From: Bugula neritina
Taxonomy: Eukaryota; Animalia; Bryozoa
Assembly: GCA_964035545.1 (NCBI GenBank)
Contig: CAXIUT010000275.1
Location: 1-25,765, forward strand
Reading direction: 5' to 3'
DNA: 25,765 bases
Positions 1-25,765 of this stretch are shown one piece after another; the first letter of the stretch is position 1; the number at the start of each line of letters is the position of its first letter. The position numbers and the translations under genes are program-made. The notes beneath the pieces were generated by a model. That model had not been told where the DNA came from, made no database searches, and saw nothing but the letters and a program-made list of their open reading frames with translations.

Positions 1-76
1 CCCAACCCCAACCCCAACCCCAACCCCAACCCCAACCCCAACCCCAACCCCAACCCCAACCCCAACCCCAACCCCA
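1..76 (+). repeat. Left telomere, (CCCCAA)n
   Basis: Perfect C4A2 hexamer array at the window start, the Tetrahymena-type ciliate macronuclear telomere repeat. Confidence 0.97.
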
Positions 77-4097: not shown

Positions 4098-4724
4098 ATG
4101 TGTAAAGATCTTGGAAATAACATCTATGAATGCAACGGAACTTGCAATAGTGGTAGTGGTGGAATTTGGGGTACTGGTCTCTACACATCTGATAGTAATG
4201 TCTACTCAGCAGCCAAACACATGGGCATGGTTCCAGGAAAATTCAAAAAAATACCAGTTCAAGGTGTCAATTCATACGTTGGGACTTCTTTAAATGGCAT
4301 AAATACCAGCAATTATGGTCAATATGGCAATAGTTTTATCTTGTTAAAGGAAGAAGGGTAAAAGGTCGAAGGAGTATCAGTAGAAACAATGAAGAAGTAG
4401 ATAAAGGAACTGATTCGAGACTAAATGTCAAAACTTGGCAATAAGCTGATGACTTCAGGAAATTCTCTTTATCTATAATTGATAAAAGAACAGCTTAAAG
4501 ATGCTTTTCATGAGGAAATGATTCAACAAAGTCACAACATGGTGCACTTATTGAAGAAAGATTCAGTGCCTTGTGTTGTTTGCTCCCAAAACTAAAGATC
4601 TCGAGTAGTATTTCCTTGCAGTCATTTTCATTATTGCGAAAAATGCATCAAGTAAGTGAGAGAAAAAGGATAATGCTTTGTCTGTAAAAAAGCTGTTAGT
4701 GGAGATATGAGAATCTATATGTGA
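4098..4724 (+). CDS. LCCL domain - helical linker - C3HC4 RING finger protein (208 aa), paralog 1
   Basis: N-terminal IWGTGLYTSDSNVYSAAKHMG...YVGTSLNGINT matches the LCCL signature (GTxxYxxxSxxCxAAxHxG...YxGSxxNGIxS). Reading through TAR gives CVVC-x11-C-x-H-x3-C-x2-C-x10-C-x2-C at the C-terminus and a TGA stop. No introns needed. Confidence 0.9.
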
Positions 4725-4743
4725 TAGTTTGAGGTTCTTTAAT

Positions 4744-4796
4744 TAAAGATTATCACTTATCAAAAGTAAATAAAGATATCACTTATTAAAAGTAAA
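4744..4796 (+). repeat. Imperfect 26-27 bp tandem duplication between the LCCL-RING paralogs
   Basis: taaagattatcacttatcaaaagtaaa followed directly by taaagatatcacttattaaaagtaaa. Confidence 0.85.
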
Positions 4797-4848
4797 TATT
4801 ATATTTCTTGCAAGTTTACAAGTATTATTATAAAATTTTATTGAAAAA

Positions 4849-5556
4849 ATGTGTAAAGATTTGGGTGGAAATATTTATGAATGTTCTGGTAATTGTGGAC
4901 ATACAGGAACAGTTTGGGGTACAGGATTATATACTGCTGATAGCAATGTCTTTGCAGCTGCTAAACATATGGGAATTATACCGTGCAAATTTAAAAAGAT
5001 AATGGCTCCTAGCTGTAATGCTTATATTGGCACTAATATGAATGGAATTTCAACAAACAACTATGGCTCTTATGGTAGCAGCTATTTTTTGATAAAAGTT
5101 GATGGGTTTAGCGGCATTGATTCAACGATGGAGTTGATTAAATCAGAAGTTAAAAGTCTAATTAAGTAATAGATGGTTTCACAAGGCAGCAACATGCATA
5201 ACTCTAGCCGTGATAGGTTATAAACAACAGCAGTATAAATAAAAAACATGGTCATGTAAGAAATGAGCAAGCAAGCTAACTCCTTAAAATAATCGACTTT
5301 ATCAAACTAAGCAACCAAAAAGGAGTTGAAAAATACAGTAAAAGAAGAAATGGTCAATCAGACAAATACTTTGATCAAATTTTTACAAAAAGATAAGATT
5401 CCCTGTGTCCTCTGTACCTAAAAGTAGAGAACTAGAGTGGTCTTTCCGTGTGGACATTGTAGTTATTGCTAAAAATGTATCAAAGTTGTTAGATAAAATG
5501 GAGAATGTTCGATTTGCAACTCTAAAATAACTGGAGACTTTCAAATTGTTTTGTGA
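4849..5556 (+). CDS. LCCL domain - helical linker - C3HC4 RING finger protein (235 aa), paralog 2
   Basis: Same MCKDLGxNIYEC start and LCCL motif (VWGTGLYTADSNVFAAAKHMG). C-terminus reads PCVLC...FPCGHCSYCEKC...CSIC with TGA at 5554-5556. The linker is longer than in paralog 1. Confidence 0.9.
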
Positions 5557-5637
5557 TATTTGACTAAATGATCATTATTAATCTATATCGATATATTTGT
5601 AATATGATTTGAGCTAGTATTAAATATAATCAAATTA

Positions 5638-6565
5638 ATGTAAAGAAAAATAGTACGTCTGGCTTCTCACGCTGGCTCCTGGTACACCCATCTTGGTACA
5701 TCTTTTTTAATCAAGAATCAAAACTAGCCCAATAACTCACTAGCAATCTTCAAAAAGCAGACATCAAACATCCATAGTCACTTAGTAAAATCAAAGGCAT
5801 TATTGGACCACACGCAGGATTGAGTTATAGTGGTCCTGTAGCTGCTTGGGGATATCAGTACTTTTAGAAAGTGAAAGATAATGACAAATTAAGAATATTT
5901 TTGTTGGGTCCTTCCCATCATAAATACCTCAATGGCATCAGTCTATCGAAGTGTACAGAACTTTAGACACCAATAGGCAACATACCAGTTGACACCTTAA
6001 GTATTATCACATCTATTCAGCTATTGACAAGTTAAAAACAGAGTTGAAGACAATCTAGTTAACCAAAAAAGATGAATAGCAATAACATAGTCTATAAATG
6101 CATCTTCCCTATATCAAAATGGTCTTAGGTAAAGCTAAAGTAGTCCCTATAATTGTAGGAGATGTCAAACGAGAGCAACTAGATAAAATATCTTCTGTTT
6201 TATCTGGTTATTTCAACGACTAAAACACTATATTTATCGTTTCAAGTGATTTTTGTCATTGGGGCAATCACTTTGATTTCCAACCATTCGATGGACAAGG
6301 ATAGATCTGGGAATTCATCAAAAGAATGGATCATAGTGGAATGGATCTGATCTAGAAACAAGATCTCAATGGGTTCTAACAATACCTCTAACAAACATAA
6401 AATACAATATGCGGATGCAATCCTATAAAATTATTTTTGGACATCTTGAAACATTCAAAAACAAAAACATAAACAAAGTTTGTCAACTACGATCAATCTT
6501 AAAAAGTAAAATCAAAAAAACAATCATCAGTAAGCTATGCCTCGAGTATCACCTACATGATATGA
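5638..6565 (+). CDS. MEMO1: MEMO1 family protein, 295 aa, two 20-nt introns (5696-5715, 6001-6020)
   Basis: Motifs RLASHAGSWY, IIGPHAGLSYSG, FLLGPSHH, EHSLEMHLPY, VSSDFCHWG, NTICG and SSVSYA. Removing the two GT-AG introns restores the frame. Confidence 0.96.
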
Positions 6566-6627
6566 CTAACTTAAATACAAATATTTAGTAAATCAAATAA
6601 TGATATATACAAAATAATATTGATTAA

Positions 6628-7927
6628 TCATTTGAGGATACTATAATTAGGTACATTGCAGATAGTACTCCCTAAATTATAGCTTCCAGGACCTGGAGTG
6701 TGGCTACTGGACATGACTGTCTTCCTTTATCGAGTAAATGAATATTTAGGAGTGGTTAGTTCATCTTTGGAAAGATAAAAAGTTGAACTTTATGTATTTA
6801 TTTTATTAAAACGATTACTTTTACCAATAGTTGCTGTTTAAGGACGTTTCTTAACAAATTTGTTGTTAGGCGTATATGTCCCTGGACCTGGATTTTGATC
6901 AGAATTATCTTTTTGACGACTTCGACCCATCGATATCTACTTTCCTCTTGTTTTGCACTCGGTTGATAGATAAGAACCTGGTCCAGGATTCTAGTTGTAA
7001 TGGATAGATAGTTTTTATGTTTTACCTATTGAATAAGACTAAGTTTTGACAGTTAACTTTTTATATTGAGGATCATACTATATAGGTCTAATGATACTTG
7101 GTTGGGTGAAGGTGATTTTTATTTTTGCTTTTATTTATATTTCTGAGCGATAGTAATAACAGGTGAATTGTTTAAATCATAGTGATTAGGATGATAGCTT
7201 TGAGGACTAGGCGATTGTTAATTTTATGTAGTTTTAATTCTACGACCCATACTATACTTTTTACCCTCACCCAATTATCCCTTCACTTAGTACTATCCAG
7301 CTAAATAAAGTAGTAAATACGGCCAATTGTGTTAATTTATTGTTTATTTGGAATGCTTTTGCCAAATACTATTCCTTTACTCAGCTAATTCGGTGAGGTG
7401 TAGTAGCTGTTGGGGGAAGGTGATTTTTAGTTACATTATGTGATAAATCTAGGTTGTCTTCCTATCTTTATCCCTTTCTTTAACTGCTTTGTTGAAGGTT
7501 GATAAGTTCCAGGCCCAGGATTATTGATATTTGGATCAGTTTTTTTATATTTAGACGCAAATGACACATGAATGGAGTGATTAGGTGTGCTAGGATGATA
7601 GTTATTGGGTGCTGGACTGATAGGTCGACTATTTTTTTATCGAGATTATCTACCTATCACGCCCATCTTCTTATCTTTTTATACTGACTTCAAATTATAA
7701 CTAGTAGGACTTGGACTATTCTATTTCTAATGCTTTTATCTTATCTCCTTACCTATTCTTAATATATCAATTGATACTTCCAAGATGGAGTTTTATTTAA
7801 TATAGTTTTAGTTTATGGTTTATAAGTTTGAGCTGATGGAGTAATGGATGGATGAGTGGGTTTGGCTGAGTAAGAGATAAATACGTTTTGATTGAATGCT
7901 GTATGCTGGAGATGATTTGAATAACAT
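6628..7927 (-). CDS. SHIPPO-repeat (ODF3/STPG-like) axonemal protein, ~406 aa, four introns (7866-7884, 7758-7777, 7301-7320, 7078-7097)
   Basis: Recurrent PGPGxY / SPSPxxY motifs followed by aromatic-S-I-G segments. Splicing introns of 19, 20, 20 and 20 nt gives 1221 nt from ATG to TGA. Confidence 0.88.
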
Positions 7928-8286
7928 TTTTGGAAATTGATTTCGAATATATGTTGGAATATAATATAAAGTTAATATTCATTTCCATTTTAGAAAACAA
8001 AAGTAAATTAATTAGACTAAATTAGAGGCTATAATATTCTTGAATAAATACTTTCCTATTATAAAGAATAAAATAAAACATAGTTACTAATTAACTATAG
8101 CAATATAATGAATAATAATCTAAGACTATTCATGTTATTTCATCATATGCAATATCCAAGATCGATGTTGTTTTGATCTCTGGATCACTTTTTGAACATT
8201 ATTTTCTTGTTTTGTTGATTTTCTTAAAAGATTTTTTATCTGATAAAGTCCATTAAATATTTATCTAATTCAATTATACAAAGACC

Positions 8287-9027
8287 ATGTAGTGTCTTTA
8301 CAAAAGCATCTAAGGCTGTGGATCTCTCTACCTAGGCCCAGAATCTACTCTCAAATAAACCCAACTCCTCGACAGTAACCCTTCATTCACCCAGAAAACA
8401 CCATCCGCGCTATCCTTTATTTCTCTTCAAACAAAACAAATAAGACCCATTCCTAGAAATGTTAATTCTTACAACTTCCTCTTCCCACTGAATCTTTTGA
8501 TTTGATGCAAACCTTTACAAAATCATATGAATTTTTAAACAAACAAAGAGTTCGAACTAATATCTTAGTGACATCTTCATAAGGAACCAATATGGCAAAA
8601 GTATTCTTATTTGCCTTTTTAATGAAAAAATACCAATATGATTTAAAATATATCAGTCGACTGTATCAAGTCAACATCAAAGCAGTATGAATGATGATAG
8701 ATATAGATGAATATACCATAAGAATACAGCAAACAATTGAAAAGAATATCAGTGCAGTTTTAAAAATAAAAATAAGAATAAGAAGAAGAATTCATGGGAT
8801 CAAGAATTGGAAGAAGAATCGTTCGAATTAGAAGAGATTATGGCAACCTTGCGACTTAAAGTCGATTTGGATCAAGATCTAAGAGTCAAAGCAAAAGTAA
8901 TCCTGAGTATTGGTCAGTTAAAAAGAAATATGAAGATAAATAAAGAAAAATGATCGAAATAAAGGGAATATAAACTTTACCAACCACCTCTAGAAAGAAA
9001 ATGGGTGGAATCAAATACGAATATTGA
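8287..9027 (+). CDS. Dual-specificity phosphatase-fold protein lacking the catalytic motif (pseudophosphatase)
   Basis: GSLYLGP...LLDKNTIRAIL...FTKSYEFLNKQRVRTNILV-TSSEGTNM-AKVFLFAFLMKKY follows the DSP layout. 20-nt intron at 8375-8394; a second intron starts at 8685 (16 or 22 nt; if unspliced the gene stops at 8690). Confidence 0.7.
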
Positions 9028-9135
9028 TTATACACAAAATTCAACCATAATTTAATTGATAAATACTAATAGTTAGTGATATTTACTTATCTGCTTATCC
9101 TATTTGACTTTAGTCATAATTAATTGAGTATAAAT

Positions 9136-9330
9136 ATGGATAAAGTTCGTAAAGAACAACTACTATAAACATTGCGCCAAGAATCATAGAAAAATAAAGA
9201 AGTCTTAAACAAATATTTGGATTCCTTGGTTTTAAAAAGAAATAGAACGTCATTAGTCATGAACAGTTTTATGCATAATGTAGTTGATATTTAAAACAGT
9301 ATCTAAACTTCATAACTATTCCTCAAATGA
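9136..9330 (+). CDS. Small hypothetical helical protein, 64 aa
   Basis: ATG-to-TGA ORF (MDKVRKEQLLETLRQESEKNKEVLNKYLDSL...) filling the gap between two genes; no family recognised. Confidence 0.45.
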
Positions 9331-9420
9331 TTACCTTTATTGTCTTTATAAGAATATCTTATATCTTATTAATATATCTTATCTTCATCTTTTGTTCAAT
9401 ATAAATTCATAATCGTTACA

Positions 9421-10884
9421 ATGGACTTGATCAAAAAGATCAGAAACTATACAATCAACTAACGCCACTGTCTAGGTTAAGGCTCATTCGGCAAAGTCTA
9501 CGAAGGCACAAGCGATGAAGGCAGAAAGGTAGCCATCAAAAAAGTAGATCAAAAGTTAATCATATCCGATCGATATCTTAAAGAATCTCTCGACAACTAG
9601 ATCAGCATTATGCAGAAGTTGAAACATCCAAATATCGTCTAATTATATGAGGTAATAACCACTGCCAACAACATCTACCTGGTAATGTAATTTTGTTCTG
9701 GAGGTGATTTAAAGCGTTACTGTTCAACTAGAAAAGTAAGTGAGTAGAATGCTTTGAATATAATAAAACAAATATCAAAAGGATTCTAGGAAATGGCCAA
9801 GTTAGGAGTGCTACATAGAGACCTCAAACCTGCCAATATTCTCGTACACCAATAAGTATTCAAAATATGTGACTTTGGATTTGCCAAGTTGTTCGGATAG
9901 GCAGGTAAAATGGCCAGAACCTTTGTTGGAACACCCATCTACATGAGTCCACAAGTTCTAAGTCAAAAACACTACACCAGCAAAACTGATGTCTGGTCCC
10001 TAGGAGTCATGCTATATGAACTCATCTTTGGTAAGCTACCTTATAGTGGGTTTAGCTAGCAAGATCTCTACAGAAACATCATGCGTGGACCCATAAATAT
10101 TCCTTAGTGCACAAGATAGAGTCGTCAGTTACTGGCCGGTATGTTAGTAATCGAGTAAAGCGGCAGATGGGCCTGGTAGGATGTAAGTTAGGTGTTATTT
10201 GGCAAAGAACCAAGAGGTATCACTGCCAACCAAGCGAATCAAGGTGGAAATGGCCTATTTTACGCCTAGAACAAGAAAGACAGAATATCGTATGATGATA
10301 AAAGAATGACTTTTGAATAGAAAAGAGGTAAATAACATGACAACCATCACAAAGGACCAGCAATTCAATCAAATGGTTACATTTAGAATGTATTTTAGCA
10401 GCCAGCAAGAATGAACTATGATCCTGTTCGAAGAGCACAGCAAGGTAAAAATATGTTAATCCCTCAATAAACAGGTTAGTAGGTTGTAAATATGGTGAGA
10501 CGTTAAAGTCAAGAATAGAAGATATAATAAAATTGTCGATTTTATTATTTTTTATTGGTTGAATATGTAGTATATCCTTTGGAAGGAAGTATCAGTTTTG
10601 ACAGTTTTATGTATACTTTATGGAAATATACTGTGACTTTATACTAAAAAATGATATAAAAACCATAAGTCAATAGTATTCAACTCTACCGTAACGTTCT
10701 TGTGAACTAACTGAGTGAATTGAAGAATCTTTAGAGTGAATTTTAGATAAAAAAAGAGGGAAATTTACGTAATTTAGCCTAGATGACATATCAGTAGGCT
10801 AGAAGTAATAGTTAGAACAGGAAAAAGATAATTTGGTTAAAAAGGTTTTTAGATAAGAAATATATCTATGATGCTATTGATTGA
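9421..10884 (+). CDS. Ser/Thr protein kinase (ULK/CAMK-like ciliate type), 487 aa, intronless
   Basis: LGEGSFGKVY, VAIK, alphaC NEISIM, YLVMEFCSGGDL, HRDLKPANIL, DFG, GTPIYMSPQVL and DVWSLG; frame open to TGA at 10882-10884. Confidence 0.95.
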
Positions 10885-10966
10885 TCGATTGATAATATTG
10901 AAGTTTGAGTAGAATTTTATTTGATTGATAATATAACCTTGACCCATAGTTATATTAATAAACTAG

Positions 10967-13215
10967 ATGGGCTGCGGTGCTCTATGCGGAGACACACTTA
11001 TTTCCTCTCCATCTCCTCTTTCCCGCTCAATTTAAGTCACAAGAACTCTTTTGCCTCGACTACCCAAGACGAATAAACTCATATCCTAGCATATCTACAA
11101 TAATTTTTTCCAAGATTATGAACTTGAACCAAAAAAGTATCACATACAAATAACAAATCACCTGGAATAGGAAATAACTACTATCAGAGAAGATATTAGT
11201 GACGTGGAAGATACTTCTTTACGGTCTTGATACATAACATAATCAATTATAGTAACTGCCTCAATGCCGATGTTTCCAGCTAAATAGCTCAATAAAACTA
11301 AAATAAAGAAGAATCAGCATTAATATATCATTAATGTTTCAGCAGATTTAAAAAAGATTTGGACAGAACATTGAATTTATCTCAATAGAAACGAGTTCAT
11401 TTTTAAAAAGTGTTGAAAAGAATCTCTAACTTCTTCCCTAAAATGGGATACACTCAAGGAATCAACTTCGTCATAGGCTTTCTCCTTATTATCGGCTATA
11501 ACTAACAAGATTGCTTCTGGATGTTTGTCCACATTGCCATTAGTCCCCGATTCTTACTTCTAGGCCTTTACTAAGATGGATTTCCTTTATGCAATGTCTT
11601 CTGTATACTATTTAAGAATATATTGAGGAGATTAGATTAGACTTTATATATCCATTTGTTTTAGAATTTAATAGTTGATGTATCTATGTGGGTTTTTTAA
11701 GTGGTTTATAACAGGATTTATCTATAGTTTTCCTTTATAAATGTGTAAAATCGTTATGGTAGATAATGATGCAGCTGGGAGGATTGGGAATAGTAGCTAT
11801 AGCTGTGGGGATAACTTTATAACTAGGACAGTATTTAAAATAGATATAAGAAATGGTTGAATTAAGTTAATTTTTTAAGAGTTTAATGGAAATATAAACA
11901 TTCAATCATTACATCAATATGGAAAAAGTCATATCTAGAGCTTATGGATTATCAATAATTCTTCAAGATTTTGATGGAATCTAATAAAATTAATTTTATG
12001 GTATATATTTTAAATAAAATCATATTCATCTTCAAAATCATATAAAAAAGTAGACAAATCTTCCTAGATATTCTTAACCAACAAACAAATCTATCTCTTT
12101 ACTTAACAACTGGTACGATAGATTAAGAGAATAGCGAATATCATTTAAAAACAAAGATAGATTATAGATATAACTACCTTTATAATCTTATGAGAAAAGA
12201 CCAAAGAAAGAATTAGTATAATAAATAAATAACAAAATAAATGAAGATTAATCTACCTCACCCGATCGCATGAGGTTGGGTAGTAGTGAACTAGGTCGGA
12301 GTGATATCGATATAAGAAGAAATATATTGAAATACCCTATAGATAGAATAAATTAGAATATCTAAGATGAAAACAAGTCAGTGATGTCTCAATATTAATA
12401 AAAATAATCAAAAGCAAACATCTAGCAGATGTCGATATCATCACATCTATCGAGAAGATCAAGACAAACCAATATAAGTAAAAGAAGTGGTATTTATAAT
12501 AGAAATCATTTATAGTAGTTAGACAAATTATAGAATGAATACTATTAGAATAAAAACAAAGTTATATTTAATAATTTTGCTAGTCCTGTTTTATAAAACT
12601 ACAAAAAAACTAGAAAAAATAAAAGACAACAAAACATAAAGTTAACATAGCAACTAAACATTCAACAAATAAAGTCATAAAAATAGACCCACTCTAACCA
12701 TAGCTGGGCAAAACACATTAAAAATATAAAACTATGATATCGTCTCAGTATCATCTAAAAACACCTCAACAAATCAAGAGTTAAAGGAGGACCCACCTTA
12801 TCATAGTCAAAAGGTCGCAGCTGTGCCTGCAAAATAAAAACATAGTAAAACAAACAATCCAACTATTAACGTAGCAGTGAACAAACCTCATCAAAAGGAC
12901 AATTCAGTGATAAGTAGTCGCTATCGAATCGCAACATGTCCCATACATAATAAAATTTATAAAGTAGTGATATACATACGACTAGTATGCAGCATACTGA
13001 TAGTCATCGATAGCGTATTCAGACAACATAGAACTATATGGCAACATAGAAACTATATGGTTAATTCTCACGGACCACAATAGAGTCAAGACAGGACAGA
13101 GGTGAGATGGAATCGTTAGAAAGAAGTTGATAGCTAGGTTTAGGTGTTACCGTTTAAGAAGGACAAGAAAGTAAAAGTAGGAAAGATATCACATATTTAA
13201 GTAGGTAATCTATGA
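10967..13215 (+). CDS. TBC-domain Rab GTPase-activating protein with long low-complexity C-terminus; contains apparent indels
   Basis: MGCGALC start (possible N-acylation), KDLDRT arginine finger, GYTQGINF glutamine finger, CFWMF, WVFKWF. Candidate introns 11137-11170 (34 nt) and 11252-11279 (28 nt). +1 shifts at homopolymers near 11695 and 11748, and probably near 12600. Confidence 0.8.
13024..13060 (+). repeat. 18/19-bp tandem duplication in the TBC gene tail
   Basis: caacatagaactatatgg followed by caacatagaaactatatgg. Confidence 0.8.
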
Positions 13216-13266
13216 TTTTTCAGTTATTAATATATGATTTAAAATATTTAAAAATATTAACGATAT

Positions 13267-13350
13267 GGGGTTGGGGTTGGGGTTGGGGTTGGGGTTGGGG
13301 TTGGGGTTGGGTGGGGTTGGGGTTGGGTTGGGGTTGGGGTTGGGGTTGGG
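13267..13350 (+). repeat. Internal (GGGGTT)n telomeric tract 1
   Basis: About 14 G4T2 units with two variant units, starting ~50 nt after the TBC stop codon. Confidence 0.95.
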
Positions 13351-13351
13351 C

Positions 13352-14371
13352 TATCACTAATCTCTTAAACAAATCACCAACCTTAAAATAACACAAGAAT
13401 AACTAGAAAAGTAAATAGCCTTGACAAAACACCAACTAGAAGTATAAAAATCAAAAACAGAACATATGAGACAAGAATACTAACTAAAATAGAATAGTTT
13501 ATTGAGACAAATTTAAGAGAAGAATATGAAGGTTAGACAGAAAGGATAAGAAGCATCAGTAGCTATGAAGAGATTAAGATAATAAAATACATAACTATCA
13601 TGCTAATTATCGCAACTAAGAGAAGATAAATTAAGATAAGGATTGAATGAAAGAAAATAGATGATATTTGAATAAAAAATGAAATAGGCTTGGATAAAAT
13701 TCGATTAATAAAAAAAAACAATGAGAACGTAGATATAGGTCCTAAAAAAAGAAGTATAAAAACTAAATCTAAGATATGAATAATAGAGAGAAAGTAGATA
13801 GAAATAAAGTGATCAATATTACAAGCAAAGATAGCAGTTTTCTTTGAGATAGAGATAATTTGGAGAATAGCTAAAGAAATTAAAAATTATGCATACAAAT
13901 ACTAAGAAAACATATAGTACTACTTATGATACAATGAAATAAAATGATAGAATATTCAGAGATGTCGAAAATATAGTTTTATTGAATAATAAATTAAATG
14001 GCTAGAAGAGATAGACTTAATAAAAAGATATAAGAAATATGAGAAAATATTATTAAAATCAAATGGAATTAATGAGATAAGACTACGAAGGATAAATCAA
14101 AATCATTAAATAGGAAATTAAAAAAATAAAAGGATTGTATTAAAACTAAAGAATAAGAGCTAACTAAAAAGAAAGTTAGCTTAAAATATGCAAAGATGAT
14201 AAAGATAGACTTAGTAAATAAGTTATATAAATGAATTAAAGGTTTATGGAAACAGTTAGTGATATTTAAAATGCAAAATAACGAGAGAGATCTTTGTACG
14301 AGGAAAGCATCGTGAGGTTGTTGGGGAATTTTTAGAAAAGATAAGAACATTTTGTGTCTAATAGAAGATGA
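13352..14371 (+). CDS. E/K-rich coiled-coil protein, apparently 5'-truncated at the telomeric tract
   Basis: 339 codons open directly from the tract edge (YHESLKQITNLKITQEELEKEIALTKHQLEVEK...) to TGA at 14369-14371, with no UTR-like spacer before it. Confidence 0.75.
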
Positions 14372-14437
14372 AAATAAGTTATTCCATGATTGATATATCA
14401 ATATATAACCATATTTGTTAGTATATATCTAAATAAA

Positions 14438-14516
14438 GGGGTTGGGGTTGGGGTTGGGGTTGGGGTTGGGGTTGGGGTTGGGGTTGGGGTTGGGGTTGGG
14501 GTTGGGGTTGGGGTTG
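14438..14516 (+). repeat. Internal (GGGGTT)n telomeric tract 2
   Basis: 13 perfect G4T2 units, starting 66 nt after the preceding stop codon. Confidence 0.95.
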
Positions 14517-14524
14517 TAAGATGA

Positions 14525-15293
14525 ATGTTTTTTATTTATCAAGGAGAAGATTTAAATAAATATTAAAGAACTTCAAAATGTAGCTAAAATATAAAGATGA
14601 ATACAAAATTTTTTATCCAGATGATTCAACTCAGAAAGATAAATATTTTAAATAATTTAACTTAAAAATTTAACTTAAAACCTATATAACTTTAAACTAA
14701 AAGATAAAATATTGAAGAAAAGAAGAAAGTTCTGAATAATTCCTATTTCAAAAAAAGGCCATAAATAGGTGATTGTGAATCAAATGATTTAAGGATATTA
14801 GATAATATTAAAGTATCAAAATATAATAGAATCATATTAGTGGTTTACTAATATTCTTGCTTCTGATCTTTTGGGGAAAAATAATAGATATAAAGAGGTT
14901 TTTGAGGAATTACAAAGAAAGGAATATCTTTATGAAGATTTATTGAATGAATATAATAGACTGGTCTAAGATTAGGCATATTAAAATAGACAAATTTAAT
15001 CATAGAACAGAAAATTCAAATAATATACTGAGTACTTATAAGATAAAGCGAATGCATTAGAAAATTAACTAAATTAAAAAGACATAATAATATGTTAAAA
15101 ATATGAATAAAAGTTTATGTAAATGGAATAAGAATTTAAATATTCGACCGATTAGTATGATAAAATTTTATAATTTGAAGTTGTTTAGAAGGATGTGAAT
15201 GAATTGAGAAATAACTAAAAGATGTTAAAGATAGTTTATAAAAAGCAAAATAAATAAATGATTATTCAGATTAATAAAGAAAGTTCCTAATGA
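14525..15293 (+). CDS. Hypothetical coiled-coil protein (one apparent frameshift near 14750; start uncertain)
   Basis: E/K-rich frame from ~14740 to TGA at 15291-15293 (…RYKEVFEELQRKEYLYEDLLMKY…); a different open frame covers 14525-14860. Confidence 0.5.
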
Positions 15294-15540
15294 ATAAATG
15301 ATTCTATTTTATTACCTTTAATATTAAACATTTAATTGACTTTTTTAATATTATGCTTCGATTGATAGAAATATGCAAAATGATTTAACTTGAATAAAAT
15401 TGTATTTTAAAAGAGTTGATGGAGGGTTTTATCAATTTCAAAATATAATTTAAAAAAATTTTAGTAGTTATCTATAAGATATAGCTTACTTGTGGATATT
15501 AAATTTAAAGGGAAATCATTTAATGTGTTATCAATAAAAG

Positions 15541-16416
15541 ATGAATAGATCTATTAATTAAAAAGTTCCTCTTTGTCCTATTAAAAGATCCTATTCACAA
15601 AACATCAATAATAAATGTTAAATTAATGATAAAATAAAAACGAATAAATATGATTAGATTGATCTGTAGTCTTAAAGAAAACGAATCCATGAAGAAATGA
15701 TGAAAAAGAAGGATGGTGAAAGGAAAGAAGATAATTAAAGTTATCAAAATACGATAAAATCTAAAGAAAATTAAATAAAATAATTTAAAAAATAACTACA
15801 ATCTTAAAAATAAAAAAATAAAGATTTATTTCTTTATTATTAACTATCAATTAAAAAATAAGTTAGAAAAAATAGAAATATTTAAATAAAATTATAGACA
15901 TAAATAAAATAAAAATAAATCTTATCTAAAATATTATAATAGAAATAGAAATAAATAAAAAATATTAAAATAAAATATTAAATATAAAAAGAACAATAAA
16001 AATAAATAATAAAATATAATATGTAAAAAGCAAACAAAGACATTTGTTTGAAATATCAAAAATAACAAAGAGAAAAGAAAAATTAAAAACCTGATAATTA
16101 TAAATAAGAAATTAAATCTTTATATCAACAACTGGACTAAATAACAAAATCAGCTATAATCTAAAAATAAAATTTATAAAAAGATATAAAATTTTGTTTA
16201 AGAGAAATTTTTGAACTCATAAAATAAAATAGACAGTTACAGTAGGCTATTTATTTGAATTAAAAGTATTAAAATAAGTAATCTTTTTAAAAATTACAAA
16301 ATTTTAAAAAAAGAAAATATTCACATCCATCTAAGGAATAATACTCTAATTAATTAATAAAAAATAAAAAAAATATTCAAAAGCTATCGAAAAGTATAAA
16401 AAACTTTACTAAATGA
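15541..16416 (+). CDS. Low-complexity E/K-rich coiled-coil protein
   Basis: About 290 codons without TGA, dominated by TAA/AAA/GAA/ATA codons; may start further upstream (~15353-15450). Confidence 0.55.
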
Positions 16417-16562
16417 TTCTATTTACATATTTTATTAAAATTGATCTTATTAAAACAATTTTAATCTTCAAAAGACTAATTTATATTAATAATATTCAAT
16501 AATGATTTATCTACTAAAATTAATATGATATTTATAGTTGATGATAATGATTGATGTTTATA

Positions 16563-19500
16563 TCAAGATAGTTTTTTGTTATTCTCCTAAACCACTAAAC
16601 TTCTAAAGTTACTTACAAATTCATGAGCAAAATTAAGATTCTTCAAAATCTATTCTATAGAACTTTGACTAGAATTAAGTTCAAATTGAATCGGACCTTC
16701 ATTCTCTTCATTTCTAACATTAACATCCAATTTAACTTTCTTTAACTCTCTCAGAACGCCCTCACTTATCTATTAATTCTCTAAAGCTTGTAATAAGTAA
16801 GGTATTTTACTAACTTTTCTAATCAAATTTAATTGAAAACGATCACTAACAAGAATAAAAACTTTTCCTTAAATTTTTAAAAAATAGCTCAATAATCCAA
16901 GTGATAAAGCTATCTCTTCCTCATACTGTGTACCTTTAACGAGTTAATCTAGCAAGACAAGACACTTATTATGAGTAGAATTATCTAATAAAGCTTTAAA
17001 ATGATGAAGTTCTGTTTGAAAATGACTCAAATTATTTTATATATTTTAATTTAAATGAATCTTACTCAATATTGTATTATATAGTGTTGTAGAATGATAA
17101 GAAGCTGGGACAGGGCAACCTATTTGAGTTAGTATTGCTAAATAGCCTAAAGAATATAGAAGATTTAATTGAGTAAATGAGTTAGGTTGTTTTTGAATTA
17201 TTACTGTTTGTTTAGTATTTGATATTTTTATAGTTATAGGATCTGATGGTAAAAACTGCGACTACTGATTCCAAAAAGTTCTGAGGTCTTTGATTTATAT
17301 ATTTTTATTAGTTTTTTGAATGATAGGAGTTGAAAAAGTAACTGATTGATGCATTTTTACCAATCCAGCAAATGATAGCAACATATCAAGAATTGATAGT
17401 TAATAATTGATTTAAAACAATACGTCAATATCTTTTTGAATTTATGAAATGATATTTTTAAGTAATCCTTCAGAAAGCAAGATAAGTTTTTTTTACGTTT
17501 ATTTGAGTCTATTATTTAAAGACAGCAAAATGGTAGTAGAAAATGTCAAAGTTCCTTTTCTTTATGTAATTTGTATGATATCATCTTCAATAGTTTCAGA
17601 TAAGGCACTCAAGTTGACCTTTTTATTACTACGTATATAATATCCTCTAAACTAGTTGTATAATAGTTTGAGTTATAGATTACTTTTTTGTTTGATATTT
17701 CTAAATATTTTTAAGATATCTTCAGTTGTGTGACTATAAGTGATTCTTAGTATTTAAATGAAGTCATCATCAAGATGATCTGCTTTGAATAAAAATATAT
17801 AATTTTATTTTTTAGTAGGTTGATTATTCTAAAAGGTCTTTAGTATTTACTCATCAAAATGAACTTCAATATGTTGTCTTAGTTGTGATACTTTATCATT
17901 ATTTATTTTGTTTCTTAGTTTTTGGAACAAAGATGAAGGCAATTCTTTATAATTTTATAATTTTTGATAAAATTTAGACAATAAAAAACAAAGATGCGAT
18001 AAAGAATAGATAGTTGATATGTAATTTTTAAGAGATTTCATATTTTTATCTTTAGGACATTGTATAAATTTAGCTGTCACTATCTAAAAATGCTTAAATC
18101 TAGAAACTTAATTACACAACAATTCATATAACGTACCATTTTATAACATAATATTCACCAACTATTGTCTCTAACGAATCATCTGCTCACTAGATAGCGG
18201 TTGCAGAAGATTACTTCTCAACATACGAGTACCTCCGCCAGTAAGACATTTGAAATGATCGATAAGACATCTATTTCCATCAAGAGTTTATCTATTCAGA
18301 AAGATCTACAACTAGATGATCGTTTGAGACTAAATAACCAATAGGTCATCAAGTACATGCCATTTGATGTTCAGTGAGTTGTAGTTGAATTTAGTTTATA
18401 AACTATTTTCTATGTGATGGAGAAGAGCATGAAGAGCAGAATAGGCTATAAATTTATGATCAGGATTATAATCATCACGATTCCCTCTTTGGTTATAAAT
18501 ATGAAAACCTCTAGTCTCGTCGAATAGCAATCTCTTCAATGATTTAAAATTTACATTTCTAAATTTAGATAACAGCTTTTGAATCAGTGGAGTGTGCTCT
18601 AGTGAAATTGAGTACAATATTTACTGAGGATAAAAACGTTCAATCGTAGATATTGTCCTAAAATAAGTCAATCTCTATATTATTTGACAAAGATGAATCT
18701 ATCCGTTGCTTGTATTGTATATTGCCAAACCAACTTCATTTGAACAGTACTAGATTAAACTAACTATATGCTATTTAATATGTCGACGTCCAGTTGTCCG
18801 ACCAGCACTAGTCTATCTCTTTGACCTTCGCAAACTCTACTACTCATGAGATTAGACAAAATTGTGAAGACTTGACCTCGATGACTGCAAATGTGAGGTA
18901 TCTAGGTGAGATAGATGAGGCCTTATGCTTGATATTAAAGGTTTTTTCGAGTATTGAAGATTAGAACTTGAATTTTCTGTTTGAGGTGGCTGTTTTGATG
19001 ATTGATTGTTTGTTGAAGTAGGTAGTTCTCTCGATGATGATCTCGGAAAGAATGTATAAGGTGATATTTGATCATTCTCTATATTCTAGAAACCTTTATT
19101 GTATTTTTAGAAGGAGAACTATTATTTTTGACTATCTTTTTTGATATGTTGTAACTTCAAAAGAGGATTGTTTTCATAGTTGAACATTGTTTATATTTCT
19201 GAGGCATCTTAGGCATTATCGTCCATCTAGTATGCTTTTTTCGATTAAGGAATATTTGAAAGCTAGAGATCACTTGTAAATCTGACTGATTTCTTTGAAA
19301 ACTAAGTTGTTTTGAAGTTTCCTTTCTTCAACCATTTTTTAGGCTCCTCATATTAGCTTTAAGGATTGCTTTTTTCAGTTCTTGTGAGGGCAAAATGACC
19401 ATATTGTCTTTTGCTAGTTTATCTATCTTTGTGGAAATATTAATTTGAAGAGGAAGGGAGGTCTTCTTTGCTTTAATCATCAGAGTCATCGTAACGGTCT

Positions 19501-19583
19501 CTTGACTAAGTGATAACAGGGAGAGATGTGTTGAGAGGACTTATACGAGAATGAGTTCTTGAGGTTTTGAGCCAGATATTCAT
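16563..19583 (-). CDS. MSH4: MutS-gamma MSH4-like meiotic protein, 1006 aa, intronless, degenerate ATPase domain
   Basis: Disordered ~270-aa N-terminus with no mismatch-binding domain I, then IVSLIE..NEVGLA..IHLCQI..TYFRTISTI, RLLFDETRG, LTGGGTRMLRSNLLQPL, LTQIGCPVPA and LVLLDELVKGT, collinear with MSH4 as I recall it. Confidence 0.85.
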
Positions 19584-19799
19584 TTAATAATTATGATTGA
19601 ATCAGTCACCTTTTGAGTCAGAAGTCCAATCAGTCAAAATATATAAATAGTTATTAACTTGATAATTGAAATTAAATGATTCTCAGATATTACATAAATA
19701 TTGTATTGTTTTGAAGTAATGAATATCTTGTTCACATAATTCTGACATTTATATTTTTCTTTTTATTAATATTGATTTAATTGATTGTTTATATCATAG

Positions 19800-20514
19800 T
19801 TTAATCAGTTATTATTGATAGTTATTTAAATACAAGTTTGATTTCAATTCAAACAGAATCAAAGAAGAGGAAGAAAAGTCAAGAGATGTAAAGGGCAATC
19901 CCACAATCATTATCAAAAGATATGCCCGAAAAGGCTGGGTTAAAAAGGTTTAAAATTGACTTAATAAAGGGAATAGTTTATTTATTTAATAGCTATTCAA
20001 GATATTGTGAATATTTGATATTCAACAGATTAAAAAATGGTCTCATGATTCTAGAATCAGAAGAAATTATATTTGACATATAAACAGGACTTCTCAATGA
20101 GAAAAACATCTTAAATAACAGTACTAACTTAGGAAGCCTAAATATATTGTTATAAACCATGAAATTTAGAGTCAAATAGTATAATTGTCGATAAAATTAC
20201 ATTGATTGATTCTAAATTAAGCTGATCAATTTATTAAATAGAAAAACAAAAAGATGATACTCTTCAGAAATGGTTGTATAAACTAACTGATCTTCAAAAC
20301 TTTTTCCAAAAACTACAATAAATCAAAAGGTAAATATCTTAAAGCAAATTCTTATCATGGTTTCAAATTGTTTAAGAAGATAAATATTGGAAACTAAATG
20401 CTAATATAGATGAAATAAGACCACAACAAAAGCTCCCCAAAAAAAGGCAAGATTAACAATGATAGAAACGCAAAACCCATTTAACAAAAACTAATTAAAC
20501 TTTTTATTCAATGA
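19800..20514 (+). CDS. Possible hypothetical protein; structure unresolved
   Basis: Two consecutive open stretches (~19800-20209 and ~20207-20514) in different frames with coding-like composition; no clear start or family. Confidence 0.3.
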
Positions 20515-20551
20515 ATTGATCTAAATATAATTGTAAATTTAATTTTAAATT

Positions 20552-21358
20552 ATGTAAAAATAGTCTCAACAATCACCCAACAACCTAATCCTCATTCGCC
20601 ACGGACAATCCAACTTCAACAGGGGATATTACGACTACCTCTCAACTCAAAACCTCAACTACACATAAATCCTCTGGTAAGATGCCTTGATTAAATTCCC
20701 TAAAATGCATTAAATCGTATGCTATGCCTAAAAACACATTGACGCTCCTCTATCTCAATAAGGAATCTAACAATGCCAACTAACAAAAAACTAACTAAAA
20801 GATTAATAAATCGATCTTGTTCTAGTCTCACCATACCAAAGAGCCCTTGAGACTTGTCAGAATATATTTGGAGATAGAAAGGTTAAAATCTAGGTGCATC
20901 CTATTTTTGCCTAAGTATTCAGGTATGCATGTGATGTGAGTCATTAATTATAAAGAAAGAGGAAATAATTTATTAATTTTGATTTTAGTCATATGGAAGA
21001 TAAAGACTAACTATGGTTTATATAAAACTTGTCACCAAAACATAAATAAACCTGGTAAAAACATCAATAATAAAATCAAAATGTAAAACAAAAACAACTA
21101 AAACTTCTATAACTACTCAAAAATAACATCATCTACTAATCACCATCATAACTAAGATCAAGAATGAATAAAGCCAAATTGGTACTAGAGTAATATCATA
21201 AAAAATATAATAAAATTGCTGTTGTATCTCACTTCTATATCTGTCGAACTTTGATCGCAGAAGAATTTACTGTTGATGGAGATATCGTTAACCCTAAAAT
21301 TATTGTCAATGCCAAACCATATCATACCTCAGTTGAAGAAATCATGAAATTCAAGTGA
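20552..21358 (+). CDS. Histidine phosphatase superfamily branch 1 (PGAM-like), 268 aa
   Basis: LILIRHGQSNFN, DAPLSQEGIEQC, VSPYQRALETC, HPIFAE, YESPSELRSR and IAVVSH; catalytic residues intact. Confidence 0.93.
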
Positions 21359-21461
21359 TTATACTTAAACTTATCTATAGCTCTTCATTTGATATATTTG
21401 AAAAGAGATATTTAAAATAGGATTGATAATAAGAACAAACTATCATTTAAATACCATCTTT

Positions 21462-21905
21462 TCATAACTTTTCACCTAAATTTCTTAAGCACTGATCTAT
21501 TGAGTTATTTACTGCAGCCATCTTCCGAGATAACAATCGGTTAAAACTGTGATATTTCATCGATTGCCTACGATCTCTATCAATCCTCTACATCTGCTCA
21601 ACTACAGCATGCTCAACCAAACCAACTCTCCCATCTCTCACATTCTCAGGAATAGGCCATTCGCCATCAGTAAAACTTACCTCGTCCTCAAAAAGCTCAA
21701 CTCCACAAAGAACTTAACCAACATTTACTCTCATTCCTTCAAATTGTTTATACAACTCCTCTGCAGTCTCAAGAGAAGGACTAACAGTCGCCTCATCCAA
21801 TTTTTTTCTTATCTAACTGTCTCTTTAAAGAATTTTAGTCAATCGAAGGGTCATTTTATCTAGTTCCCGCTAGCGATGCAACTCAGAATCTAACTATTAC
21901 TACAT
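21462..21905 (-). CDS. Hypothetical acidic protein, 147 aa
   Basis: Clean ATG-to-TGA ORF (MEEELDSELHRERELDKMTLRLTKILERD...) with higher GC than its flanks; no family recognised. Confidence 0.7.
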
Positions 21906-21942
21906 TAATATTTATAAATAACCAAAGTAATCATTCAGATAA

Positions 21943-22610
21943 TCATTCAGCTAATTGTTCGCTCATTGTTTCTCCTTCAGGATTGTTTTTCATCATAGTT
22001 TGCTTATTTAGCTCACAATTTAAGAGGTTTTTTCTATCAAAACTCTTTTCTTCAATGAAAAAACATCCGCGACAAACTGGCTTATACATATCTGCTCCTC
22101 CTATGATTTGAACCTATTTGCTCTAGCTTACTCTCTTCGTAAATGCTGCTTCTTTTGTGCAATAGACACAAATAGCATTTAGTTTTGTAACCTTTTCAGC
22201 TTTTGGAACCAATTCAACTATATTTCCAAATGCCTTTCGCTAGAATGTGCCATCAAGAGCAGCCACCACCACACTTTTCCCTAAATTAGCCACTTATTCA
22301 CAGAACTCAACTATGTCTTCAAAAAATTGTCCCTAGTCAATCCCAATCACATCATAATCTTGTAGCTTGTCAACAATAGGCATCAAGGCAGTAACTTTGC
22401 TTGCTTTTTTGGTGATTCTAAATAAAAGAAGAACTACTTATCATGAGTGACCATTTCTTCAAGTTCAGAGTAACGATTGTCATGTGCAAAATTGAGGACA
22501 TGACAACGTTTATGAGCATGTTCAAAACGACGTATTTTTCTTAGAAGTTCTGAACTTTTTCCACTAAACATGGGTCCATAGATAAGTTAAATACTCCCTC
22601 TAACTTGCAT
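21943..22610 (-). CDS. TK1: Thymidine kinase (TK1 type), 215 aa, one 20-nt intron (22418-22437)
   Basis: [39 protein letters not shown], zinc ligands CVYC and CRGC, and IGGADMY. Confidence 0.97.
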
Positions 22611-22816
22611 TTTAATTTAATTTATAATTCCTTTTGGAGGGATTTTATTTCAAATCAATATCCACTCCCACGTCAACACAAAACCATATCTAATCCAAAA
22701 AAACAACTCACAATCTGATCAATCGAAGACTATCTCAAAAAATCTCTAGATTTTATTTTTTAAAATAGCAGTCCATTTTTGATATTCCTTCATTGATTAT
22801 AAAAGATCATAAAAAT

Positions 22817-24139
22817 ATGAAATCATTCTTATCTCGATCACCTTTTACAGGACATATATTCGAACAAATCCCTTTCTGTTCTTCACCACATATTCAATAG
22901 CAATTACTCTTAGCCAGCAAAGGATATTAATTGCACAGTAAAAGATCAATTAAAGAGAAACAGGGATTGATTGGATCGGTAGGTAAGATGCTTCAAAAAA
23001 GAAAATAAGCTATTATTCAAGTATTTGGATAAGAAACAGGTAGAATTCGTGAATAAGTTGAATATTAAATCAATCAAACAACCAAATTATGCGATTTCTA
23101 TAGTCAGTATCGACAAGGTTTACTTACTTTTAATGTTAAAACAAACGCAAAAAAGAAAACTCTGATCAAATTAACTCCATTAGGCACAGTTTATTTTATA
23201 ATTCCATCAAACTATCCTCTATTAATTACTTTCTCGAAAATATTGCCCCAATTATTACTAGGCAATACAGTACTCATCCGTCCAAGTTATAATACTCCAT
23301 GCACATTGAAATTTATAGATAAAGCTATAAAACAAATAGGCCTATAACTAGGATAATATCAAACTATTTTTAATAGTTAATAACAATTCTAGTAAATTAT
23401 TGAAAATAAACAAATAATCGGAGTCAACTGCAGTGCTAGCAAATAAATAAGCTCTAAAGTAGCTTCAATAGCTGGAAAATGTCTAAAACCTTGGAATATA
23501 TCAACATAGTCTAGAAGTTTATTAGTTATAATGGAAGATGGTAGTTGCTAAAAAGCTATTGACTAGATTTTCAAACCTGGAATTCTATGTGGAGGGTAAG
23601 GATTCGGACCAAGAAAAGTTATTATCCATGAATCAGTTTATGAAAAGTTCAAAGAATTGTTGATGAATAAGTTAGAATCATTGATAGCTGGTGATCCTAT
23701 GAATAATGATATAAGTTTGGGACCTTTGCCTCGTTTGGAGCTCTTTAATGAGATATAAAACAATCTTAATTATTTATCAGGCTAATCTAGAGTTATTTAT
23801 CAAAAAAAGGGAATAAAACAACCATTTTTTCCACCAACAATATTTGAATCAGTTTAAAAATTGACATAAAATAACATAAAAGGTTTGGTTTTTGAATTAA
23901 TAAAAGTAAAATCAACTTAAAGTTTGATATCTCTTAGTAATAACATTGATTCAACCTCTATATTTATATTTAGTCAACAAAACTACAAGCATATTTTGTA
24001 AAAATTGGATACAGGAAGTATATTTATCAACAACTTCGACTACTTCAATCCAAAACATGTAGTTGGTTCTAAAATATTTAAATAAGGTTCAGGTTCAGTT
24101 AAACTTTTTGGAAACATTAAGACACAATATATAAACTGA
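22817..24139 (+). CDS. Aldehyde dehydrogenase fold protein (SSADH/Sad-like), 440 aa, catalytic motifs degenerate
   Basis: SRSPFTG, EETGR, PLGTVYFIIPSNYPL, LLLGNTVLIRPS, AGKCLKP, IIHESVYEKF, GDPMN..LGPL, FFPPTI, LDTGSIFIN and GNIKT in ALDH order. Confidence 0.85.
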
Positions 24140-24274
24140 TCTCAAATACTACAATATTTAACATCAATTATCATTATCTTTAAAAGATTGATTATCATGT
24201 ATTATAGATTATGAATATTGATATGTATTATTCGTTATATTAGATAATATATGGTAATAATCACTATTCTTGTT

Positions 24275-25504
24275 TCAATGACGAAAGACTGCATTTATTT
24301 ATCTTTTTTGTCTTTTATCCAAATGTTGTATATTTTTATAAGCTCCTTTCTTGGGTGCTCTCTACATTAACTTCCCAAAAAGACCGTTCTGATTACATAT
24401 TATCTTCTGAATCTTGTTAAATCTTATTTAACTCTGAGATACACTTTTATTCCTGATCCTTGAATTACAAATATTCTCATTTTTCTTTGCATATTTTATT
24501 ACATCTTTATTTATAGTTGATTTATTCGATTAAGTAGCCAATGATTAGCTCAAATTTTATGACTTTTTTCTTTTTTGTTTTTGTCCCTAATCCCTCAGTC
24601 TAATCACTTCTGTTTTTAGCATTTAATATCTAAGTTTTAATTCCTCTTTTTATTATATTTATTTATTCAATAGTCTTTTAGTTGCAATTTCTGATTACTT
24701 CATTTTACTAATACTCTTATCTTTTTAATACAAATTTTCAGTCATTTTTATTTTTTATTCTTTGTTTTTAGTCATAGTATAAAGCAATTATTTTTCTTTA
24801 CTTATAAATTAAATCGATTTATCTTTATTTCTATTGATCTAAATATTCTAATTAAGTTTTTTCTCAACAAAAAACATAAATTACTTATGTTTGATATCAA
24901 TCATTGATTCAATATCTTTTGTTTTTGATTATTTGTTTTTTATTTATTATTTTATCATCAACAACAACGTATCCTGTTTCTACTGCAGATGTCCTAACTC
25001 ACTAAACAAGTCTTTCATCAACTATCTGTTCCTTTATTTTTATTTTTTATCAATGTTCAGTAAAGATTTTTGATTTTCTTTATCAATTAACTACATCTCT
25101 TAAGCAATTTCATAACCAAGAATATCTTTAAATTTGCATAATCTTTTGGTAGTAAATTAAAGTTTAGACTCCAATTTTTATATTTCCTCTTTATTTTTGT
25201 ATTTATCCTAATCATATTTATTTTGAATTTAATCTACCTCTATTTCTAATAGATTTTTTTCCTCTTTAATTCTTTTAAAATTTTACTAAAAATCAAGAAC
25301 AACCCGACACTTCTTAACCTAACTCTGACGAATCATATTTTTACAGATAGGACATTTAGGAAATGCCTCGTGTCCAAAAAGTTCTTTTTTACAGCTTTAA
25401 CAAACTAGATGCTGATTTTAGCAGATAATAGTAGGATACCTATCTTGACTATTGAAATCAAGGAAGCAAAGAAAACAAGTGAAGTCGTATTTTTGAAATA
25501 ACAT
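24275..25504 (-). CDS. N-terminal RING finger plus long coiled-coil protein, 409 aa
   Basis: CFLC...YPTIICENQHLVCESC...CPIC, then an E/K-rich helical region; frame open from ATG to TGA. Confidence 0.85.
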
Positions 25505-25672
25505 GGCTAACTACCTTATTCAAATTAATATAAAAGGAAAATATTTAAATATATATTATGCGCTAATTTATATATCATATTAAAGAATTATTTAAAAGGA
25601 TAGTTTTAAAAGTTATTTAAAATAATGTTGTAAAGTAAATATTTTAAAAATTTAAATAATTATGAATTGTTA

Positions 25673-25765
25673 GGGGTTGGGGTTGGGGTTGGGGTTGGGG
25701 TTGGGGTTGGGGTTGGGGTTGGGGTTGGGGTTGGGGTTGGGGTTGGGGTTGGGGTTGGGGTTGGG
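25673..25765 (+). repeat. Right telomere, (GGGGTT)n
   Basis: Perfect G4T2 array running to the window end, after ~170 nt of AT-rich subtelomere. Confidence 0.97.

Follow-up and report, generated by a model that had tools for sequence, protein, structure and literature searches.

Evidence that UAA and UAG are glutamate codons on a ciliate macronuclear chromosome in a Bugula neritina assembly

The stretch of DNA analyzed here, referred to as the window, makes up all of contig CAXIUT010000275.1 (G000:C284; 25,765 nucleotides; G+C content, ∼28%) in the assembly of the bryozoan Bugula neritina (GCA_964035545.1; 216 Mb in 321 contigs). It represents an entire macronuclear chromosome, derived from a ciliate that accompanied the sequenced animal. 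Judged from its coding sequences, this ciliate very probably uses NCBI genetic code table 30, with UAA and UAG as ordinary glutamate codons and UGA as the only terminator. A preliminary description of the window had proposed that TAA and TAG (together, TAR; UAR in RNA) both encode glutamate, and this observation is correct; separate likelihood tests on five gene families and comparisons of paralogues and orthologues led to the same amino acid for both codons. The code itself is already known and published. As that description had stated, UAR=Glu is table 30 and is known from peritrichs (PMC11687900, PMC10553269, PMC5062323); it has been reported for peritrichs and Sessilida (PMC11687900; PMC10089648) and inferred for Campanella and Carchesium (PMC5062323). 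No difference was found between the code of the window and that of the table 30 peritrichs (Vorticella, Opisthonecta, Carchesium, and Campanella), which have the same meanings for TAA, TAG, and TGA; the lifestyle of the window ciliate is also one typical of sessile peritrichs.

Genes were read as TGA-delimited frames, and codons were counted in nine of them (3,554 codons). These frames contained 150 TAA, 76 TAG, 99 GAA, and 42 GAG codons but not a single TGA, although TGA accounts for 3.0% of codons in the two alternative frames of this DNA, a frequency at which ∼107 in-frame occurrences would be expected. The reassigned codons are the majority glutamate codons, with 226 TAA plus TAG versus 141 GAA plus GAG (TAR, ∼62% of glutamate codons). 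TGA closed all nine genes examined, in agreement with the earlier claim that it is the sole stop. A second in-frame TGA lies no more than eight codons past the stops at 5554, 10882, and 21945, which close three of the nine genes. The pattern recalls the reported enrichment of tandem UGA codons in Oligohymenophorea sp. PL0344, but nine genes are too few to establish such an enrichment.

Context-dependent codes exist in ciliates, in Condylostoma and the karyorelicts (PMC4967479), and the gene ends examined here numbered only nine. It is nevertheless very unlikely that TAA and TAG are sense codons that also end some genes, or that TGA has a second meaning (selenocysteine or tryptophan), because TGA was found at each of the nine ends and nowhere within the frames, and because in all six aligned LCCL-RING genes (described below) the TGA stop falls in the same alignment column, at a conserved C terminus. 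The TGA of the MEMO gene stands at what we take, judging by human MEMO1, to be the conserved C terminus of that protein as well.

The amino acid specified by each codon was evaluated with profiles for five families: thymidine kinase (TK), MutS domain V, aldehyde dehydrogenase (ALDH), Memo, and protein kinase (Pkinase). Bacterial and archaeal reference genes were fetched as DNA loci, profile hidden Markov models were built from the reference open reading frames, and the window frames were aligned to them after all TAA and TAG codons had been replaced by X. Each exon was aligned as a segment of its own, without assembly into a spliced model. Each masked codon was given a Codetta-style score, the sum of log(emission/background) over the aligned profile columns, and as a control each sense codon was masked and decoded identically. 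An uncorrected likelihood was biased toward common residues (32 of 59 controls right), and the background-normalized score was used instead. With it, 47 of the 59 sense codons were decoded correctly, including GAA as Glu, CAA as Gln, AAA as Lys, GAT as Asp, AAT as Asn, and TAT as Tyr. The 12 misses were mostly rare codons or near-ties (such as Leu/Val or Ser/Gln) and gave no sign of further reassignment.

Glutamate was the best-scoring residue for both codons in this test, which covered 79 aligned TAR sites. For TAA (n = 48) the scores were 23.0 nats for Glu, 11.0 for Asp, 7.1 for Asn, 6.9 for Gln, 4.4 for Lys, and −29.5 for Tyr, and Glu won in 98.9% of bootstraps; for TAG (n = 27) they were 15.3, 7.9, 7.0, 5.2, 4.4, and −16.1 nats, respectively, and Glu won in 94%. 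Glutamate stayed on top when any single family was left out, and when families were taken singly it ranked first in all five with TAA and in four with TAG. A Codetta-type inference, which had been suggested as a check on the assembly, thus returned glutamate for both TAA and TAG in the window. At the 24 reference columns dominated by Glu, the window has five TAA, three TAG, and three GAA codons, an excess of TAR (8 of 24) with a hypergeometric P value of 8e-6, whereas the reference columns dominated by Lys (13), Gln (5), or Tyr (19) had no TAR codon at all. Three TAR codons were on Asp-dominant columns, a conservative change.

The sites that the preliminary description had singled out as invariant glutamates were confirmed to be in frame. 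The TAG of the thymidine kinase motif ID[TAG]GQFF (22333-22335, minus strand) occupies a column with Glu in all 24 references, and the TAA of the MutS Walker B motif LLD[TAA]L (16944-16946) occupies one with Glu in all 27. The profile emission of Glu was 0.45 at the alphaC TAG of the kinase (9598) and 0.54 at its hinge TAA (9688), and it was 0.39 and 0.50 at the two TAA codons of the MEMO1-like gene (6083 and 6095). MutS 18621 and 18306 are further individual TAR sites of this kind in the profile alignments. The TAA at 20912 in the histidine-phosphatase-like gene is also in frame, at a putative Glu column that was assigned without reference sequences. Conserved glutamines, as had been noted, are encoded by CAA, both in the GQFF of thymidine kinase and in the YTQG motif of the TBC-type segment (motif at 11449, Gln at 11455).

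A further line of evidence came from the two LCCL-RING paralogues that lie next to each other in the window. The reciprocal swaps described between them were found as stated, with GAA in the first gene opposite TAA in the second at 4638/5470 and 4662/5494 and TAA opposite GAA at 4671/5503. The longest stop-free LCCL piece retrieved six relatives with 63 to 76% identity from ENA and Logan assemblies, one of them from a Lake Taihu cyanobacterial-aggregate metagenome (SRR12678610). In an alignment of the two window paralogues with four relatives, the residues opposite TAR were Glu (35), Asp (18), Asn (5), Lys (4), and Gln (4). The relatives also have in-frame TAR codons and end with TGA, and therefore several environmental ciliates form a group that uses this code. 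When the code was inferred from the metagenome relatives, the test was underpowered (six kinase domains) and placed Glu best by ∼1 nat.

These results bear on other codes in which UAR codons are reassigned. The window has C4A2 telomeres, which resemble those of Tetrahymena, and it shares with table 6, in which TAA and TAG are glutamine as in Tetrahymena and Paramecium, the joint reassignment of both UAR codons and TGA as the only stop; the difference lies in the residue. Table 6 is also the commonest ciliate reassignment and is likely ancestral in the Oligohymenophorea (PMC10553269). However, glutamine scored 16 nats (TAA) and 10 nats (TAG) worse than glutamate, which bears out the earlier statement that the code differs from the usual ciliate UAR=Gln. 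The control codon CAA was decoded as Gln in the same test, and TAR codons were on none of the Gln-dominant columns versus eight Glu-dominant ones. Moreover, reading TAR as Gln would raise glutamine to 10.1% of codons and leave glutamate at ∼4%, compared to 3.8% and 10.3%, respectively, when TAR is read as Glu. Glutamine as the meaning of both codons is thus scarcely credible.

A split code like that of PL0344, with UAA as lysine and UAG as glutamate, is known from the same ciliate class (PMC10553269), and the window shares with it UAG=Glu, the TGA stop, and, through its sister contigs, tRNA(CUA) genes; the only suppressor tRNAs that the assembly yielded were of the CUA type. Yet for TAA in the window, Glu outscored Lys by 18.6 nats. 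TAA codons stand on the invariant Glu columns of MutS (16944 and 18621), the kinase (9688), and MEMO (6083 and 6095), none of the 13 Lys-dominant columns has a TAR codon, and TAA and GAA replace each other between the LCCL-RING paralogues. The chance that the window follows such a split code appears negligible. In Mesodinium (table 29, UAR=Tyr), both UAR codons have likewise been reassigned to a single residue other than Gln; tyrosine was rejected for the window, with scores 52 nats below Glu for TAA and 31 nats below for TAG.

Glutamate for both codons also requires attention to the decoding tRNAs. The preliminary description had suggested a search for tRNA-Glu-derived tRNAs with UUA and CUA anticodons, and in assembly-wide pattern searches two intact tRNA(CUA) genes were found on small sister contigs (C10:16787-16858 and C256), while tRNA(UUA) was not found in the assembly; charging of the tRNAs with glutamate is predicted. 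The two tRNA(CUA) genes are 80% identical, and in a BLAST search of the assembly with the C10 gene the C256 gene was the sole match. They belong to a family with 45 CUA and 16 UUA members in JGI metagenomes, which have D- and T-arms in common and fold as a cloverleaf with seven pairs that show compensatory changes. It is possible to propose how the code might work from these observations. A tRNA(UUA) of the same family, as seen in the environmental relatives, would read UAA and by wobble UAG; both tRNAs would be charged by the glutamyl-tRNA synthetase (GluRS); and eRF1 would not recognize UAR. An eRF1 domain-1 match, from an eRF1 or Pelota gene, is present on ciliate contig C314 (17948-18310, minus strand) and has three TAG and four TAA codons in frame within 121 codons. 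In Carchesium, a GTS change is reported among the altered N-domain motifs of an eRF1 restricted to UGA (PMC10089648).

Several observations weigh against glutamate as the meaning of both codons. No tRNA(UUA) was found by the pattern searches, which covered canonical T-loops only; the matches to tRNA(UUA) patterns were host sequences resembling short interspersed nuclear elements (SINEs), one tRNA-Pro(AGG), and one mitochondrial-looking tRNA on contig C73. A UUA member of the tRNA family would have matched the search patterns; with a broader T-arm pattern, host repeats overwhelmed the results. Of the two codons UAA is used more often, yet a CUA anticodon cannot read UAA by standard wobble. The simplest reading of the missing tRNA(UUA) is incomplete representation of the ciliate in the assembly. 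In addition, the anticodon arm of the tRNA(CUA) has what we take to be a Gln-like appearance. Three of the 79 aligned TAR sites (23345, 23507, and 6500) are on columns with strong conservation of Gly or Pro and are probably misalignments in very divergent stretches of the ALDH and MEMO genes. Furthermore, the profile references were distant from the window (bacterial and archaeal; the ALDH gene is ∼20% identical), and for this reason many TAR sites were uninformative.

Other features of the tRNA searches were as follows. The C10 tRNA(CUA) has an A4-A69 mismatch in the acceptor stem, at a pair that is U4-A69 or C4-G69 in most relatives; the A4-A69 variant also occurs in two JGI metagenome contigs, the flanks of which are unrelated beyond ∼20 nucleotides. 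A candidate tRNA-Glu(UUC) lies on contig C54. Contig C73 (70.6 kb) carries two near-identical AT-rich tRNA-like genes, around 6135 and 17707, with an 8-nucleotide anticodon loop and no ARAGORN name, together with a tRNA-Phe and a Glu-type anticodon match, and it is probably the mitochondrial genome of the ciliate. At least 11 tRNA genes (Met, Asn, His, Ser, Phe, Lys, Pro, Ser, Glu, Met, and Tyr) are clustered on another small contig (G000:C214:41188-45349); this cluster is organellar or bacterial in appearance and may indicate a further cobiont or organelle in the assembly. No tRNA genes were found in the 25.8-kb window.

The organism is most likely a peritrich, and it could be a sessilid peritrich that lives as an epibiont on the host colony. 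A peritrich fits because of the code, the association with a sessile host, the habitat of the relatives (cyanobacterial aggregates are typical for sessile peritrichs), and the two introns of exactly 20 nucleotides. A search of the assembly with RF01960 (18S) returned host rDNA copies only. The same UAR=Glu code might instead have arisen independently in a ciliate outside the Peritrichia, but this seems unlikely: a single origin, in the Peritrichia, has been reported for UAR=Glu at both codons (PMC10553269), introns in peritrich genomes are likewise tiny and have a narrow length range (PMC13685798), the organism lives with a sessile animal, and a relative is present in the Lake Taihu metagenomes. 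If the organism were not a peritrich, a second origin of UAR=Glu would follow. Sharing the small probability of that outcome is a lesser variant, in which the UAA-reading tRNA of a peritrich was converted to CUA; the commonest glutamate codon, UAA, would then be read in some unrecognized way.

The assignment of the window to a ciliate macronucleus rests on its being short, linear, capped with telomeres at both ends, and gene dense (at least 11 genes in 25.8 kb), with tiny introns. CCCCAA/GGGGTT repeats are common to many other small contigs of the assembly, and tandem 18S arrays and ordinary tRNA families are located on its multi-megabase contigs. A 6-kb stretch of the window had no second copy anywhere in the assembly, the large contigs included, and therefore the small and the large contigs are not the somatic and germline parts of one ciliate genome. 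In mid-contig there is an internal GGGGTT tract in the same orientation as the right-hand telomere, followed directly by unique sequence; internal GGGGTT tracts likewise occur in sister contigs C10, C11, C14, and C15. The region after the tract (13351-16413) is very AT rich (G+C content, ∼22%) and has a strong GC skew (up to 0.41) and long TGA-free frames rich in TAA, none of which was matched to a recognizable gene.

The small telomere-capped contigs belong to the ciliate, and reporting them as sequence of the host should be avoided; they supply macronuclear chromosomes, complete from telomere to telomere, for a lineage in which few genomes are available. Table 30 is needed for annotating them. 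Every gene in the window would be fragmented or mistranslated at ∼6% of residues if the standard code or table 6 were applied.

Features of the window, with coordinates and the evidence for each (Pfam was run on stop-free pieces)
Feature	Coordinates	Strand	Evidence and remarks
CCCCAA telomere repeats	1..75	+	Left chromosome end; letters read directly
LCCL-RING gene A	4098..4724	+	ATG to TGA; Pfam LCCL, E = 2e-10; 6 TAA, 1 TAG
LCCL-RING gene B, paralogue of A	4849..5556	+	ATG to TGA; Pfam LCCL; 9 TAA, 2 TAG
MEMO1-like gene (homology-supported part)	5775..6565	+	Memo profile positions 47-283 of 286; ends with TGA
GT..AG intron, exactly 20 nucleotides	6001-6020	+	In MEMO1-like gene
Ser/Thr protein kinase gene	9421..10884	+	Pfam Pkinase, E = 9e-16; 15 TAA, 21 TAG; ends with TGA
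TBC-type segment with YTQG motif (putative)	11203..11764	+	Motif and codons read; family label from the preliminary description
Internal GGGGTT tract, ∼84 bases	13267..13350	+	Mid-contig; same orientation as right-hand telomere
MutS/MSH-like gene, ∼1,006 codons	16563..19585	-	MutS profile positions 12-607; 33 TAA, 25 TAG; no TGA before stop
Histidine-phosphatase-like gene (putative)	20459..21358	+	RHG motif; 30 TAA, 2 TAG; ends with TGA
Thymidine kinase (TK1-type) gene	21943..22612	-	Pfam TK, E = 4e-14; 24 bacterial/archaeal references; ends with TGA
GT..AG intron, exactly 20 nucleotides	22418-22437	-	In thymidine kinase gene
Divergent aldehyde-dehydrogenase-family gene	22817..24139	+	Pfam Aldedh, two pieces; profile positions 25-444; 20 TAA, 4 TAG; ends with TGA
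RING-finger and coiled-coil gene	24275..25506	-	Translation; 27 TAA, 10 TAG; ends with TGA
GGGGTT telomere repeats	25673..25765	+	Right chromosome end; letters read directly

The TAA codons of the putative histidine-phosphatase-like gene are contained in just 299 codons, and Pfam gave no match for the C-terminal piece of this gene. An exact-protein look-up of one open reading frame of the window returned no record. In MutS proteins the Walker A motif is GPNMGGKS. The corresponding region of the MutS/MSH-like gene (∼17165-17205, minus strand) is degenerate, reading QKQPNSFTQ with the P-loop lysine missing, while the Walker B motif is retained as D-[TAA=E]-L. On the basis of these motifs, the gene may encode an ATPase-impaired MSH paralogue.

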